A DNA stretch of 64,000 bases from the IMG/VR virus record IMGVR_UViG_3300024308_000302, positions 1 to 64,000 of that record. One strand, given 5' to 3'. Positions 1,428-62,704 of the stretch are shown in pieces. Under the pieces are notes generated by a model that saw nothing but the letters and a program-made list of their open reading frames with translations, did not search any database and had not been told where the DNA came from. Made by a program: the position numbers and the translations under genes. The first letter of the stretch is position 1; each line of letters begins with the position of its first letter.

Positions 1428-1446
1428 GTAGAAGATAGTAAAAGTG

Positions 1447-1713
1447 TTAAGCGGCCAGAGTTTGTTGACGCATCAGTTTGGTAGTCTGGATTTTACCAGA
1501 GCGAGTCAGAGATACGCGGGTATCAAAAAGGTCTTTGCTACGAGCAATCAGACCTTTGCCAATCATGTTATTGATGACAGCACTAACCTGATTCGACTTG
1601 ATGGTAGCTGGGCCAACAGAAAGAACGTTTTGTGGAATGCTTTGACCAACACCGTAGTTCTGGATGTTTTGCAGAACAGCTTGTTCAAGAGCGGTGATGA
1701 TGAGCTTAGCCAT
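1447..1713 (-). CDS. winged-helix (MarR-like) DNA-binding protein, paralog 1
   Basis: start at MAKLII; IKSNQVSAVINNMIGKGL helix and wing pattern VSLTRSG; near-identical to 2598-2873. Confidence 0.6.
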   Translation of the reverse strand: MAKLIITALEQAVLQNIQNYGVGQSIPQNVLSVGPATIKSNQVSAVINNMIGKGLIARSKDLFDTRVSLTRSGKIQTTKLMRQQTLAA

Positions 1714-12263: not shown

Positions 12264-12434
12264 GAAAATAGTCCTATTAATGAAAAGAAATTTTTAAATG
12301 CTCGATTTTGCAAAACAATGAGAAAGGCTTATTTGCGTGCTCGCTCATTGCCGCTTCGATGATGGAATTATAATACAATAAGAAAATAAAAACAAGTTTA
12401 TTTAAAGGAAAAAGGCCCTTCAATGGGCCTTATT

Positions 12435-13052
12435 TTAGTGAGAGCAAGATGGGTTATGGAGCAAGCCTTGTTTCCAGTGTTTACGGCATACCGAAACATA
12501 GCTGGTTTCAGCACCTACAACCACCTCGGCACCATCACGAAGGATTTCACCAGTTTCAGCATTGAAGCGGGCATTCATTGTAGCTTTAACACCACACCAG
12601 CAAATGTGTGGGAGGGCTTCAATTTTGTCTGCAATTTCAATGAGACGTTTCGAGCCGGGGAACAGTTCACCTTTAAAGTTAGTGCGAAGGCCGTAGCAAT
12701 CAACACCAATATTCAAGAAATCGACAACATCCGAGAGTTGTTCAATTTGCTCTGGAGTGTAGAACTGTACTTCGTCGCAGTAGATATGGGCGATAACTTC
12801 GCCAGCTTCTACTTTGGCCTTGATGATTTCAAAAATGTTAACACTATCGTTTACGGAGATACTTGGAGCTTTAACCCCAAGGCGAGATGCGATTACACCT
12901 TCACCAAAACGAGTGTCTACAGAGTGGGAGAACAGAACAGTGTGCTGACCACGTTTAACGTAGTTATCGTTAGCAATGAGCAGACTCAAGCTCTTACCCG
13001 AGTTCATCACTGCATGGTTAAAAGTGAGTTTGATTTCTACCGACATTGCCAT
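12435..13052 (-). CDS. tdk: thymidine kinase (TK1 family), copy 1
   Basis: MNSGKS P-loop, CDEVQF, YGLRTNF, CWCG...CRKH zinc site. Confidence 0.95.
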   Translation of the reverse strand: MAMSVEIKLTFNHAVMNSGKSLSLLIANDNYVKRGQHTVLFSHSVDTRFGEGVIASRLGVKAPSISVNDSVNIFEIIKAKVEAGEVIAHIYCDEVQFYTPEQIEQLSDVVDFLNIGVDCYGLRTNFKGELFPGSKRLIEIADKIEALPHICWCGVKATMNARFNAETGEILRDGAEVVVGAETSYVSVCRKHWKQGLLHNPSCSH

Positions 13053-13119
13053 ATACCCTTGTTCGTTTCGATGGGATGATTATACCAAAACCAACAAGGG
13101 GGATCAAGAAAAATAAGGA

Positions 13120-15824: not shown

Positions 15825-16328
15825 TTAAAGGCCAAGTTTCTTCAAAATGGTTTCTTGTCGATTTTCCAAAAATTGACGTTGTGGAACTTTACCAGTAATT
15901 GCTGGTCGGCCACCAGCTTTAATGTTTTCAATTTTTGCTTGAAGCCTACGAATTTCATGCTCCAAGGAATCAATTTCTTTTGCATCATCAGCAGCCGCTT
16001 TTTCAAAAGCAGTGGCGATTTTCTTTTTGATAAAATCAACAACACGTTGATGATCGTGAACAAAATGATAAAGCGAATTGTCACGACTTGGAATATAATC
16101 GCGGCATTTACCATCTTTTTGATAGAACATGTATTGGTTATTGCATGGCATATAACTCATAGGTTGAGTTACATCAAAAGAAGTAACAGAGAAATACTCT
16201 TCACTAGCAAATGTGACAACCTTGATCAAGCTATTTTCAAACTGACCAAAGTGCATTGTATTGTCCCAAAGGGAGAGATTGGACAAATCGATGACTTTAT
16301 CACCAACATTGTATTTAAACTGAGTCAT
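15825..16328 (-). CDS. hypothetical protein, paralog of 5062-5544
   Basis: shared N-terminus; coiled-coil C-terminus. Confidence 0.75.
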   Translation of the reverse strand: MTQFKYNVGDKVIDLSNLSLWDNTMHFGQFENSLIKVVTFASEEYFSVTSFDVTQPMSYMPCNNQYMFYQKDGKCRDYIPSRDNSLYHFVHDHQRVVDFIKKKIATAFEKAAADDAKEIDSLEHEIRRLQAKIENIKAGGRPAITGKVPQRQFLENRQETILKKLGL

Positions 16329-16500
16329 GTGGCATCTCCCTTAAAATATGGAACGAGTATACAAGAATCAAGTGATAAAATCAAGTTTTATGCCTTACTG
16401 ATTCATTTTTGATTAGATCTTTTAGAAATATCAAGAACCCAGTTTTTCACAAAATAGCAGAAATAAAAAAAGGGGCCGAAGCCCCTTTGATGCAAACAAT

Positions 16501-16802: not shown

Positions 16803-17513
16803 TCAGTAACGAATTTGAACTTGTTCGGTTTCTTTATTGAATGAGTGCCTAACAACGTGTGGCATATCTTTAGTTTCTTCCTTGAAAATATGACGAAGTT
16901 CTCGCTGCAAGTTTTCAAGTTCTTTGACAAGTCCATGAACTTGATTGTTCAACTTAGAATCATCAACTCGTTTTTTAAGAAGAGTATAATATGCGTCCCG
17001 TTTCTGGCGAAGAGTATCTTTAGTAACATCAATTTGAGACTTCAATTTGTTTACTCGATCAAGATAAGGAGCCTTGAAAGAGCGGACAGCAGAATCATTC
17101 AGTTTCGAGCTTTGAATGATATTGAAGATGCGAACAATGTTTTCGGTGGTAGGGTTACTCAAAAACTCAGTGATAAGGTGCTTAGCAGTAGGAATATCAA
17201 ATTCCAAGGAATAATCGACTTTACCACGAAGCCCAACACCAGCACGTACAGTTGGTGTAGCACGGTCAGTATAGCTGAAAGCCAAAGAAATAGTGTTCAC
17301 GAAACGTTTATGACTGCCAAGCTCATGATAGATACCACCAAACCCCAAAATAGCAACATAATCAAAAGTCACTGGTTTGGAAGTGTAGACATTTCTGCCA
17401 ACGAAAGTGTTACCACCTTGTTTACGATTGAGTTCTACAAAAGTAAACCCTGGCAAGGTTTTGAACTGAGTCATCAAGGGTTTCAGGACTTGCATTGGGG
17501 TTGTGTTTTTCAT
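16803..17513 (-). CDS. hypothetical protein with coiled-coil C-terminus
   Basis: 236-aa ORF. Confidence 0.75.
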   Translation of the reverse strand: MKNTTPMQVLKPLMTQFKTLPGFTFVELNRKQGGNTFVGRNVYTSKPVTFDYVAILGFGGIYHELGSHKRFVNTISLAFSYTDRATPTVRAGVGLRGKVDYSLEFDIPTAKHLITEFLSNPTTENIVRIFNIIQSSKLNDSAVRSFKAPYLDRVNKLKSQIDVTKDTLRQKRDAYYTLLKKRVDDSKLNNQVHGLVKELENLQRELRHIFKEETKDMPHVVRHSFNKETEQVQIRY

Positions 17514-17607
17514 AGGAAATGCTCTGTAGGATTAATGAGTGCAGTATAACAAAAAAAGAAAAGGAAATAAACTAATTTTTAAAATAAAAAAGGGCCGAAG
17601 CCCTTGG

Positions 17608-32664: not shown

Positions 32665-32780
32665 AAGTAAGAACTCATTTGAATAGAGCTGAATTATAGC
32701 ATTATTTAAAAATCAAGGCAACAAAAAACCCCGTACATACGGGGCTTTTTTCTTTATTAAATTCTATGATTGGAGTTTAA

Positions 32781-32813
32781 TTAAGACTGCATCTTTAGTT
32801 CACCTCGGGCACT
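32781..32813 (-). other. minigene unit (GAGGTGA-7nt-ATG CAG TCT TAA)
   Basis: same core as the 58974-59417 array. Confidence 0.7.
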
Positions 32814-32848
32814 GAATTATATAATAAACCGTTAATATAAGTAGTCAG

Positions 32849-35399: not shown

Positions 35400-35477
35400 G
35401 GGTGCTCTTGGTAAGGATTTGAACCTACGACTTGTGGGTTTCCGCCCACAAACTCTACCAGACTGAGTTACAAGAGC
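35400..35477 (-). pseudogene. aberrant tRNA-like element (8-nt anticodon loop GCGGAAAC, bulged T stem, ends ACCC)
   Basis: 7-bp acceptor stem GCTCTTG/CAAGAGC, D arm and TTCAAAT loop intact. Confidence 0.65.
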
Positions 35478-36492: not shown

Positions 36493-36529
36493 ACTCATTA
36501 ATTATCAGTAGGTTTATCGTGGTTTAATT

Positions 36530-36706: not shown

Positions 36707-36835
36707 TTAAGCGTCTTGATGACGATTGCGGCGTTTATCACGGAATTGACGGTCTTTTTTTGCAAAATTGCGGGTTTCTTTGTCACGACCTTTAGAAGTG
36801 AATTTTTCGGTCATATCGTTGTGAGAACCTTGCAT
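36707..36835 (-). CDS. 42-aa basic peptide, MQGS...RDKRRNRH family
   Basis: AAGGA SD; leader motif; co-transcribed with tRNAs. Confidence 0.8.
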   Translation of the reverse strand: MQGSHNDMTEKFTSKGRDKETRNFAKKDRQFRDKRRNRHQDA

Positions 36836-58213: not shown

Positions 58214-58672
58214 TCAGGTAGCAATCTTAGGCTCAGCATTTTTGTTTACAGCATGCCATTTTTGCTTTTTTTGTTGTCTTTTTGAAATATAGATTTCTGG
58301 ATTTTTAATCATTTCACCCAGTTTTTCAAGTGTGATAATCCTGTTTCCTTTGAGATTGTTGCAAACCTGACACATAGGTTGATAGTTTGCCAATTCATTA
58401 CGACCACCACGACTTTTAGGGTGAATATGGTCAACAGTCATAAGAATCATATCAGCAGTAAATACATCCCAATGGATTCCACCTTGTGAATCAATGGAGC
58501 GAACTACCTTTTCACCAATATTTGTACAGCCGGGAGTGACGCAAGCACAACCCTTGTGGAAAAACACTTGCAGGCGGCAATGATCTTTAAAACCTTCCAA
58601 ACGAGTAACAGGATATTCTTGATCGAAAAAAGCACCAAAACGTGGGATTTTTTGACCTTTAACAAGTTTCAT
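58214..58672 (-). CDS. HNH endonuclease-domain protein
   Basis: TVDHIHPKSRGG.N...N...MC..CN..KG. Confidence 0.9.
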   Translation of the reverse strand: MKLVKGQKIPRFGAFFDQEYPVTRLEGFKDHCRLQVFFHKGCACVTPGCTNIGEKVVRSIDSQGGIHWDVFTADMILMTVDHIHPKSRGGRNELANYQPMCQVCNNLKGNRIITLEKLGEMIKNPEIYISKRQQKKQKWHAVNKNAEPKIAT

Positions 58673-58741
58673 TGTTCGAATCCTTCTTTTTTTGATTTCT
58701 GTTTTTAGTGTAACATAAGTATATTTTTAGATCAACAAAAA

Positions 58742-58759
58742 AGCCACCCGAAGGTGGCT
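58742..58759 (-). terminator. terminator closing the minigene-array transcript
   Basis: GAGCCACC-TTCG-GGTGGC-TT plus U-tract. Confidence 0.85.
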
Positions 58760-58973
58760 CTTTATCTGAATTCTTCACAAGGCGGCATGATAAATGTGCC
58801 ATTTAATGAAAACCTTGCTCCAATCGCACCACTCTTTATATATATGAGATCTGCAAGATGCGATTCACTTCACTCATATCCACAACAGCTAAGTTCAGTT
58901 AAGGGGGCCTGTCGTGGTCAGCCATCACCTTAAATACATCATCATAATTAATCAAATATAAAATAATTAGAAG

Positions 58974-59417
58974 TTAGTTCTGCATCGGCGGTTCACCTCC
59001 CGGCACCCAATTAATTAGTAGGGGTTAATCGGCAATCTTAATCAAATTAATAGTTTCAAAATTATATAAGTTAGTCAACTTACTGCATCGGTAGCTCACC
59101 TCTGGCACTCAATTAAGTAGTGTGGAAGTCAAATTTGTTTCTAAGATTAATCAATAATAGGTTATCAAATTAACTTAGTACGGCATTGCTAGCTCACCTC
59201 CGGGCACTTCATTAAGAGTATCAATCGGTTTATAAAAAAGGTATTGCAATCAAATATTCTAAATTAATCAAGTCTATAATTTAAGTTCAATGCTGCATGG
59301 GTAGCTCACCTCGGGCACTTGCATTAATGTGTTCGGTTTAGGCTATTCTAACAAATTAATCAATAAAATAAAAGTTTTAATTTACTGAGTTTTACATTTT
59401 TAGCTCACCTCTGCACT
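58974..59417 (-). repeat. array of five approximately 100-nt units, each a strong-SD minigene (M*, MQH*, MPY*, MQ*, MQN*)
   Basis: core (A/G)GTGC(C)N0-2GAGGTGA-N7-ATG; ATG-to-ATG periods of 99, 112, 98 and 103 nt. Confidence 0.85.
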
Positions 59418-59435
59418 TTCTTTATTCTTTCTGTT

Positions 59436-59482
59436 TCTCGTCTTGATGTGGCTATAATATCAAAGAGTCACAAACCTGTAAA
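59436..59482 (-). promoter_or_regulatory. sigma70 promoter of the array, with the CATCAAGACGAGA start motif
   Basis: TTTACA-17-TATTAT with TGn extension. Confidence 0.8.
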
Positions 59483-61849: not shown

Positions 61850-62032
61850 TCACGGGGCTTTTTCATTTTGTTTAAAAAGAGATGCAATATCACCATCAGC
61901 ATGTTTTGCAGCAAGTGTAAAAAGTTCGTCTGCTGGCATATTGTTAAACGTTTCAACAGTGGTATCAAGAGCTTTTTCAAGGTCTTTGGAAAGCTGAACA
62001 CCAAAGACCCTATCAAGAGCACTCAGAGACAT
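61850..62032 (-). CDS. small acidic protein
   Basis: TAATG overlap with the upstream gene. Confidence 0.65.
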   Translation of the reverse strand: MSLSALDRVFGVQLSKDLEKALDTTVETFNNMPADELFTLAAKHADGDIASLFKQNEKAP

Positions 62033-62634
62033 TAGCAAATACCCATCGCAACATCAAGGTCTTCTGCCAGTTTTTGCTGGTTTTCTGGCGAGAACGTTTC
62101 CATCAGGTTTTCGATTTCAGCATTGACGAATGCACGCATAGCTTTGATGTTGTCAGTGACAGACATTTTGCCATTCAAGGTTGCAACATACAATTGAGTA
62201 TGGGAAATGTAGTTACGAACAGTAACCAGTTTCAGACCACCACCCAGCATGAAGTTAACAGGCACATTATTGTCGTTGTCAAGATGGAAACCATCGAAGT
62301 CATCACCATTTTCAATGGTGCGATTATCAAGGTCTACAACAACAACTTTACGAGCACTGAGCGAAGTCATAGGGGTGGACTTGTTCAGGAAAATAGTGGT
62401 ATTTTTTGCACCTTTTGGCTTGGCATAACCAATTACAACAAAGCGATTTTCGATAACTCGCACAACTTGCGTTTCACCACTGTCCATAACCAGAGACAGA
62501 ACACCATCAACATCGGTTTTTTCCAGAACAAAGTTCTGAGTAAGCATTTTGGAAACAGCTTTCATTTCACTGTTTTTAGCAAAGATGCTGACCAGTTTTG
62601 CTTTCAGTGCCGAATGATTCAGTGCTTTAGTCAT
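62032..62634 (-). CDS. hypothetical protein
   Basis: start at MTKALN (AAGGA SD). Confidence 0.75.
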   Translation of the reverse strand: MTKALNHSALKAKLVSIFAKNSEMKAVSKMLTQNFVLEKTDVDGVLSLVMDSGETQVVRVIENRFVVIGYAKPKGAKNTTIFLNKSTPMTSLSARKVVVVDLDNRTIENGDDFDGFHLDNDNNVPVNFMLGGGLKLVTVRNYISHTQLYVATLNGKMSVTDNIKAMRAFVNAEIENLMETFSPENQQKLAEDLDVAMGIC

Positions 62635-62704
62635 TGTGTAATTCCTTTCTTCGTTGATTTGATGTGTATAGTATAGCAAAAACCTGTTGTTTGAACAAGT
62701 TTTT

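Follow-up and report, generated by a model that had tools for sequence, protein, structure and literature searches.

Minigenes have been a laboratory curiosity for decades, through lambda bar and synthetic libraries, and a few of them act as local regulators. Lambda bar sites are solitary and look accidental, and they are known through a phenotype that pth mutants show in the laboratory. To our knowledge, there is no case in which evolution maintains minigenes as a repeated, stand-alone RNA. Rules for the toxicity of minigenes are published: shorter minigenes give more drop-off, with a strong Shine–Dalgarno (SD) sequence the ribosome can re-initiate while remaining bound, no stop is more harmful than UAA, and the last sense codon sets the rate (PMC8708949, PMC2490762). 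In full-text searches, minigenes came up as laboratory tools and as local regulators, and start-stops as elements within genes, alongside SD-based stabilisers and tRNA-trailer sponges; no conserved array or family of stand-alone phage minigenes was found.

Five such minigenes lie in tandem on the minus strand of the 64-kb window considered here (the whole stretch of DNA analysed, the first 64,000 nt of IMG/VR virus record IMGVR_UViG_3300024308_000302), and relatives of them form a family. As in lambda bar and in synthetic toxic minigenes, where an SD and an AUG are followed by one to three sense codons and a stop, the bar-type build (SD, start, up to about 3–7 sense codons, in-frame stop) is found in all five array units; 37 of the 38 family units have at most two sense codons and one has four. 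Unlike bar, the units occur as 2–5 repeats in a dedicated RNA and also behind tRNA genes, are kept across diverged genomes, vary in their last codons and include start-stop copies. In Escherichia coli, start-stops (yecJ, hslR) bind ribosomes (10.1101/520783). Bacterial sites of this type resemble unit 1 of the array and its orthologues at loci L002, L003 and L138 (ATG TGA), in which the AUG that follows the SD stands directly before the stop; the other four array units have one or two sense codons. Bacterial start-stops lie inside genes and tune their host ORF in cis, whereas the units belong to non-coding RNA with no ORF to tune. The leader mini-ORFs of LEE1 and axe-txe (PMC3262186, PMC8708949) also are short ORFs with their own SD, in which translation matters and the product does not, but they have two codons and act on a gene a few codons downstream, while the array is followed by a terminator and no gene. 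STAB-SD elements and 5′ stabilisers (PMC4113751, PMC5737220) share with the units a strong SD in untranslated RNA, and STAB-SD works by holding a ribosome. However, a STAB-SD is an SD-like sequence near a 5′ end that lacks a start codon and shields the coding region behind it, whereas the units keep both AUG and stop, and neither a coding region nor other cargo follows them.

Sponge RNAs, such as CsrB/RsmZ and the tRNA 3′ETS-leuZ sponge (10.1101/2021.04.25.441314), likewise carry tandem SD-like sites in non-coding RNA. The tRNA-trailer location of the 3′ETS sponge is shared by units at 36503–36351 of the window and at L131, L135 and L148. In contrast to CsrB/RsmZ, where hairpin loops display many GGA motifs, the units have no hairpins and show a GGA (G at −15) in only 6 of 37 cases, and their sequence suggests the ribosome itself as ligand. 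ToxI and phage pseudo-ToxI are tandem repeat RNAs with a period of ∼34–36 nt, located directly upstream of a toxin gene. The array is also a tandem repeat RNA between promoter and terminator in a phage, and three of its short words look similar to ToxI. A ToxI-like antitoxin was nevertheless ruled out by the period (98–112 nt), the neighbours (the downstream gene encodes an HNH endonuclease, with no PADLOC match), and the lack of structure and of an Rfam match. A CRISPR array, with near-identical repeats of 28–37 nt and unique spacers of similar length, does not fit either: array copies are 64–76% identical over 33 nt and their spacers share motifs.

The array and its relatives

The anatomy of the array agrees with most of what the initial annotation had described (Table 1). 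Five minus-strand units are bracketed by a promoter and a terminator hairpin, and no ORF of at least 60 aa lies between them. All five share the same build, namely GTGC, 1–3 nt, GAGGTGA, exactly 7 nt, ATG and an early stop, which comes after 0, 2, 2, 1 and 2 sense codons in units 1–5. The reported recurrence every 98–112 nt corresponds to spacings of 99, 112, 98 and 103 nt in transcript order (repeat finder, five copies), and the TTGATTAAT motif of the AU-rich spacers is indeed present inside the array, in four copies. In the spacers of relatives, ATTGAWT is found about 30–36 nt past the ATG. This spacer motif occurs mostly in units that precede another unit.

Table 1. Features of the five-unit array and the other units of the 64-kb window
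Feature	Position	Strand	Details
Sigma-70-type promoter	59454–59482	−	TTTACA, 17 nt, TATTAT, with TG extension; 10/12 matches
Leader	59425–59447	−	Purine/A-rich, CACATCAAGACGAGAA...; putative start point
Unit 1 (start-stop type)	59383–59424	−	SD 59411–59405, ATG 59397–59395, TAA 59394–59392
Unit 2	59277–59330	−	SD 59312–59306, ATG CAG CAT TGA 59298–59287
Unit 3	59167–59218	−	SD 59200–59194, ATG CCG TAC TAA 59186–59175
Unit 4	59068–59119	−	SD 59102–59096, ATG CAG TAA 59088–59080
Unit 5	58964–59017	−	SD 58999–58993, ATG CAG AAC TAA 58985–58974
AU-rich spacers	58947–59363	−	TTGATTAAT at 59363–59355, 59271–59263, 59154–59146 and 58955–58947
Structured 3′ domain	58777–58940	−	Closes with conserved hairpin
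3′ hairpin, stem P1	58818–58813 : 58782–58777	−	
3′ hairpin, inner stem P2	58800–58797 : 58787–58784	−	
Intrinsic terminator	58736–58759	−	Hairpin 58759–58742: 7-bp GC-rich stem, TTCG loop; T run
Unit in tRNA-Arg(UCU)/tRNA-Leu(UAA) operon trailer	36503–36451	−	ATG CAG CAT AAA CTT TAA; ahead of terminator
Unit in the same trailer	36400–36351	−	ATG CAG TTT TAA; ahead of terminator
Unit in 3′ UTR of 103-aa gene	32776–32822	−	ATG CAG TCT TAA; 36 nt ahead of terminator

The dedicated transcript proposed for the array is supported, as a prediction, by homologous arrays, in which promoter, leader, 3′ hairpin and terminator are conserved. Canonical promoters stand at the same relative position at L087, L003, L134, L138 and L140, the leader word CACATCAAGACGAGAA recurs at L087 and L128, with similar words at L003 and L134, and an intrinsic terminator of the same kind closes every homologous array. 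Stand-alone arrays have 2–5 units and share the promoter, an A/C-rich leader, a structured 3′ domain and the terminator. Both stems of the 3′ hairpin covary among eight arrays: the outer stem swaps wholesale between CAAGG(C)/(G)CCTTG and GGTG.GG/CC.CCACC, and the inner stem between GGC/GCC and GAC/GTC. The 3′ domain with its covarying hairpin constitutes a separate RNA motif that has not been described. It measures 70–300 nt across stand-alone arrays, has a two-stem hairpin with the loop AATTYAWC, and is also present at L140 (4830–5040, plus strand) and in the matching part of L148.

The neighbours of the array are mostly ORFans, together with the HNH endonuclease, a NUDIX protein, a metallophosphoesterase, a protease and a virion-protein fragment; PADLOC found no defence or toxin gene among eight neighbours. 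The HNH endonuclease gene (58214–58672, minus strand) starts 64 nt past the array terminator and is missing at the homologous positions of relatives. Elsewhere in the window, long ORFs are frequently overlapped, nearly over their full length, by a long ORF of the opposite strand (e.g. at 12423–13079, 15825–16412, 16803–17549 and 62032–62679), which is unusual at 35% G+C.

The array is not the only site of its kind; three further units lie elsewhere in the window (Table 1). GAGGTGA-N7-ATG occurs there at eight sites against 0.07 expected, a number reached in none of 100 shuffles, and no long ORF starts at any of the eight. The search of related phages that the initial annotation had suggested yielded both homologous arrays and isolated units. 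Altogether the family comprises 38 distinct units on at least eight related huge-phage contigs, with only 1–3 loci per IMG/VR genome piece. Pattern scans located L002/L129, L003 and L087/L128 in IMG/VR, on contigs of 150–440 kb, and L131, L133, L134, L135, L138, L140, L146, L148 and L150 in JGI metagenome contigs. Anchors devoid of the ATG were also used: three GAGGTGA at unit spacing led to L087, and a word of the 3′ hairpin led to L128 and L129. In units recovered by these anchors, start codon, spacing and early in-frame stop are all kept. The long-type 3′ hairpin, taken as anchor in IMG/VR, gave no match. A profile of the unit core applied to 1.35 Mb of collected sequence returned exactly the known units, all in sense orientation, with neither an antisense copy nor a degenerate copy with lost start. 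Subtypes recur across contigs: the start-stop subtype is found in four arrays, and the GAGCCAATAATG subtype adjoins tRNA-Leu on three contigs (window/L139, L131 and L135).

The same phage, with the array at 98–100% identity, is present in three public sequencing runs. DNA and protein searches of the GenBank phage collection gave no match to the array region or its neighbours, and Rfam, run on the window and 12 related loci with gathering and permissive thresholds (E up to 10), returned only tRNAs, the sub-threshold matches being noise. No family member was found in a genome collection of 185,579 species. Its four matches are ordinary gene starts, at about the chance rate, and mimicry of a host initiation region was rejected for this reason; three of the four we take to be SecY-like from their N-terminal sequence. 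The window sequence is also contained in a metagenome contig of 1.54 Mb (Ga0247725_1000001), compared with 290 kb for the IMG/VR record, and a related contig of 1.86 Mb (Ga0308158_10000001) has at least five unit loci. The window may belong to a huge phage, to a provirus residing in a small genome, or to a contig that was assembled as a chimera. Phage genomes with the unit family also carry tRNAs and an aminoacyl-tRNA synthetase. Relatives encode TrpRS, with 95% identity between two of them; the best match of this TrpRS in public phage databases (68.6%) is to records labelled Acinetobacter phage.

Conservation within a unit

Conservation was counted by position over 37 distinct units with standard spacing. 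GAGGTGA is invariant. The seven spacer bases, which the initial annotation had taken as variable, are free only from −3 to −1; C at −6 is invariant, A at −4 is conserved in 92% and T at −5 in 81% of the units. In the start codon TG is invariant and A is replaced once by G, giving a GTG start at L134. G at +6 is found in 92% of the units, the three exceptions being all start-stop units, and an AAGTGCC box at −22 to −16 is conserved at 73–89%.

Conservation of the stop depends on the reading frame. The first frame-0 stop comes after 0, 1, 2 or 4 sense codons in 4, 9, 24 and 1 of the 38 units, respectively. A stop within two sense codons is thus found in frame 0 in 37/38 units (97%), versus 5/38 (13%) and 2/38 (5%) in the other frames; from local composition, 29% (0.29 per unit) is expected. 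In these 37 units, the stop is codon 2, 3 or 4, and TAA, TGA and TAG are all used. The classes with the stop at codon 3 or at codon 4 have equal distances to the downstream motifs, which indicates that the stop occupies different in-frame positions and is not part of one conserved word. The encoded peptides differ (MQ, MQH, MPY, MQN, MQI, ME, MP, MK, MKR and MVY). The share of UAA among unit stops (89%) is not clearly higher than in genes (76%). As to RNA structure, RNAalifold predicts 0 pairs for the unit, and folding of single units gives a mean z of +0.17 relative to shuffles.

Frame-specific stops, invariant SD, spacing and start, and the lack of RNA structure together argue for selection on initiation and immediate termination. 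This agrees with the initial claim that initiation, rather than RNA structure, is selected, and the units recovered with anchors devoid of the ATG point the same way. The simplest reading is selection for ribosome binding, start-codon recognition and immediate termination. Ribosome binding and SD pairing alone do not account for the AAGTGCC box and C at −6. The SD duplex might be prolonged past one mismatch by the C, Y and A found at −6 to −4; conservation outside the SD leaves room for a protein or RNA decoy.

The strength of the initiation sites was estimated from SD duplex energies, computed with an assumed canonical 16S tail. Unit duplexes have 7–9 bp and energies of −11.7 to −16.2 kcal/mol, compared with a mean of −6.2 kcal/mol for 100 ORFs of the window, even though the starts of the latter were picked to favour strong SDs. 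The SD of the units lies 4 nt farther from the ATG than in window genes with recognisable SDs (aligned spacing of −11 versus −5 to −9), so that the unit may not be tuned for maximal initiation. Second codons are peculiar as well: all 34 sense second codons are NNG, against just 9% in genes, and they are rare synonyms in the genome (CCG, 4% of Pro codons; GTG, 9%; GAG, 16%; AAG, 18%; CAG, 27%). In 24 of the 38 units, the last sense codon belongs to the ordinary NNY or NNA type.

Other candidate relationships were tried and rejected. A stem between an upstream TTA.. and the ..TAA stop, which could have accounted for the stops independently of translation, is too weak (cognate −1.6 versus non-cognate −1.2 kcal/mol); it was equalled by 198 of 5000 permutations, and its energy is close to 0 in many units. 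A derivation of the units from tRNA-Leu fragments, with which they share a GCCCGAG..GGTGAA word, found no local alignment that beat shuffles at p ≤0.05 in 24 comparisons. An anti-SD/anti-AUG small RNA from the opposite strand was discarded, as it is the SD strand that agrees with promoters, terminators, tRNAs and the stop pattern.

Units in tRNA operons

The five-unit array itself has no tRNA. Elsewhere, units are found 3′ of, or between, genes for tRNA-Leu, tRNA-Arg and tRNA(CAU) in relatives, and at L131, L135 and L148 they come after tRNA genes and ahead of a terminator, as in the tRNA operon of the window. The tRNAs associated with units are Leu(UAA), Leu(UAG), Arg(UCU), CAU and Gly(UCC). 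Every unit is co-oriented with the flanking tRNAs, genes and terminators.

The operons show several further peculiarities. At 36835–36300 of the window (minus strand), L131 and L146, a gene for a very basic protein of 42 aa (MQGS...RRNRH...) forms a cassette in which it is followed, in this order, by one or two tRNAs, units and a terminator; this cassette is duplicated in L131, 1.4 kb apart. ARAGORN detects tRNA-like genes with abnormal anticodon loops, ‘ga’ and ‘tc’, at 35401–35477 of the window and at 1353–1432 of L148 (both minus strand), amid duplicated genes for tRNA-Leu, tRNA-Arg and tRNA(CAU). A conserved stretch of ∼330 nt with a structured look (L133, 2160–2440, plus strand, and the matching part of L150) lies in a tRNA operon between tRNA-Leu(UAA) and a unit; Rfam gave no match to this stretch. 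Finally, L146 has, after tRNA-Arg (∼1440–1470, plus strand), a minigene that is outside the unit family (AAGGAG, 7 nt, ATG GCT CTC GCA TAA).

Possible modes of action

The units may be ribosome-engaging minigene modules, expressed by the phage and acting in trans on the translation apparatus, a reading to which we give about an even chance. We infer that the units are transcribed and occupied by ribosomes, that they act in trans and that the phage benefits. Each unit of ∼100 nt would be a genuine initiation site with a 1–4-codon ORF, endowed with a strong SD, a fixed spacer and an AUG (once GUG). Its A site would present a rare NNG codon or a stop, and the peptide would be irrelevant. Conservation would concern an event in which a ribosome binds and initiates and then terminates straight away, while still attached to the SD. 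Such modules would be expressed in non-coding, strongly transcribed contexts, either in the dedicated RNA with 2–5 units or in trailers and spacers of tRNA operons. Ribosomes cycling on these minigenes would tie up ribosomes and initiator tRNA and, via drop-off, short peptidyl-tRNAs too. As an outcome, host translation would be retuned or depressed, possibly with the help of co-transcribed phage tRNAs reading A-ending codons.

Two sub-versions are conceivable, capture of ribosomes and initiator tRNA, or sequestration of peptidyl-tRNAs. The NNG second codons, taken with phage tRNAs for A-ending codons, suggest a codon-selective version, and the varied last codons together with the start-stop units indicate that there is no single tRNA target. 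Candidate roles named in the initial annotation were a sponge for host shut-off, sequestration of fMet-Gln-tRNA and a decoy for toxins. The Gln-specific version of sequestration is weakened, as last sense codons vary widely and start-stop units form no peptidyl-tRNA. Judged by their sequence, the units fit every published rule for toxic minigenes at this level (short, strong SD, UAA), and the family shows purifying selection on exactly those features that make minigenes harmful or ribosome-retaining. The small number of loci per IMG/VR genome piece counts against a stoichiometric sponge, for which 1–3 are few, and sequestration of ribosomes would harm the phage too, unless it is selective. In its fullest form, which we put forward tentatively and consider rather doubtful, the units would constitute an evolved translation-interference RNA, in which optimised minigene arrays cooperate with phage tRNAs. 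Futile cycling of host ribosomes would trap ribosomes, initiator tRNA and short peptidyl-tRNAs, and would shift translation to the A-ending codons of the phage. If true, this would be the first natural function of bar-type minigenes and the first RNA sponge with the ribosome as ligand.

The locations of the units would also fit an action in cis. A ribosome parked on SD and AUG would shield the array, the tRNA precursor or trailer, or the 3′ UTR from RNases, and the early stop would only prevent run-on translation. Units do occur within transcripts beside tRNAs, in a 3′ UTR and ahead of terminators. Precedents include the block of RNase J1 by ribosomes initiating at a strong SD (PMC5737220), the stabilisation of mRNA by mini-ORFs against endonuclease attack (PMC8708949) and STAB-SD (reviewed in PMC4113751), and comparison was also made with the hbs leader and the LEE4/axe-txe mini-ORFs. 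However, in most tRNA cassettes the units come last before the terminator, with nothing downstream to shield, and in stand-alone arrays they are the main RNA content. Protection leaves the tandem copies, the NNG second codon and the fixed long spacing unexplained, and the host may not be a Firmicute with RNase J1. Altogether, cis protection is unlikely.

Conservation beyond the pairing reach of the 16S tail, as seen in the AAGTGCC box and at C −6 and G +6, would be explained by a decoy that mimics an initiation region and titrates a factor binding SD-plus-AUG regions; translational repressors, SD-directed nucleases and small RNAs whose seed is anti-SD would be candidates. The early stops would then be a side-effect of a live ribosome-binding site. 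The tandem, multivalent organisation recalls known sponge RNAs, and tRNA trailers are known as sponges of small RNAs (10.1101/2021.04.25.441314). Yet no binding partner emerged: the window and loci (1.35 Mb) contain no anti-unit sequence, all profile matches being sense; no real gene of these phages has the same initiation region; the GGA-in-hairpin architecture is lacking; and ATG to GTG as the sole change of the start is not what a decoy predicts. Such a decoy seems to us improbable.

The bias of second codons could point to codon-selective depletion of tRNAs, which sharpens the idea of the initial annotation: tRNAs for G-ending codons would be trapped as short peptidyl-tRNAs, while the phage, which rarely uses these codons, co-expresses tRNAs for A-ending ones. 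The strict NNG at 34/34 sense second codons, despite the rarity of these synonyms in the phage, the set of unit-associated tRNAs (Leu(UAA), Leu(UAG), Arg(UCU), CAU and Gly(UCC)) and the published minigene rules (PMC8708949, PMC2490762) are all in line with it. The last sense codon, however, is NNY or NNA in 24/38 units, so trapping would most likely hit a tRNA that is not specific for NNG, and start-stop units trap no tRNA; this depletion is quite improbable. Very hard to credit are a repeat that is selfish or acts at the DNA level (iterons, MITE-like, homing site) and a structured non-coding RNA that resembles SD and ATG by coincidence: copies are multiple and modular, an HNH endonuclease gene adjoins the array and the 3′ domain is truly structured, but units invariably point in the direction of transcription, inverted termini were not observed, 1–3 loci per IMG/VR genome piece are few (a dispersed selfish repeat was rejected on this count), frame-specific stops are meaningless at the DNA level, and the units themselves have no structure and no Rfam match.

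Collectively, the unit family is real and conserved, undescribed as far as the literature search found, and its mechanism is resolved only in part. It is possible, though we hold it only tentatively, that the units represent a new class of RNA with the ribosome as ligand. If the ribosome-engaging minigene modules act in trans, they would provide phages with an RNA-only route to reprogram host translation, and simple constructs would allow a direct test of what natural minigenes are good for. With an action in cis, they would represent a new portable RNA-protection element. Either way, they constitute an unannotated RNA family with a clear sequence signature, which annotation pipelines have missed.
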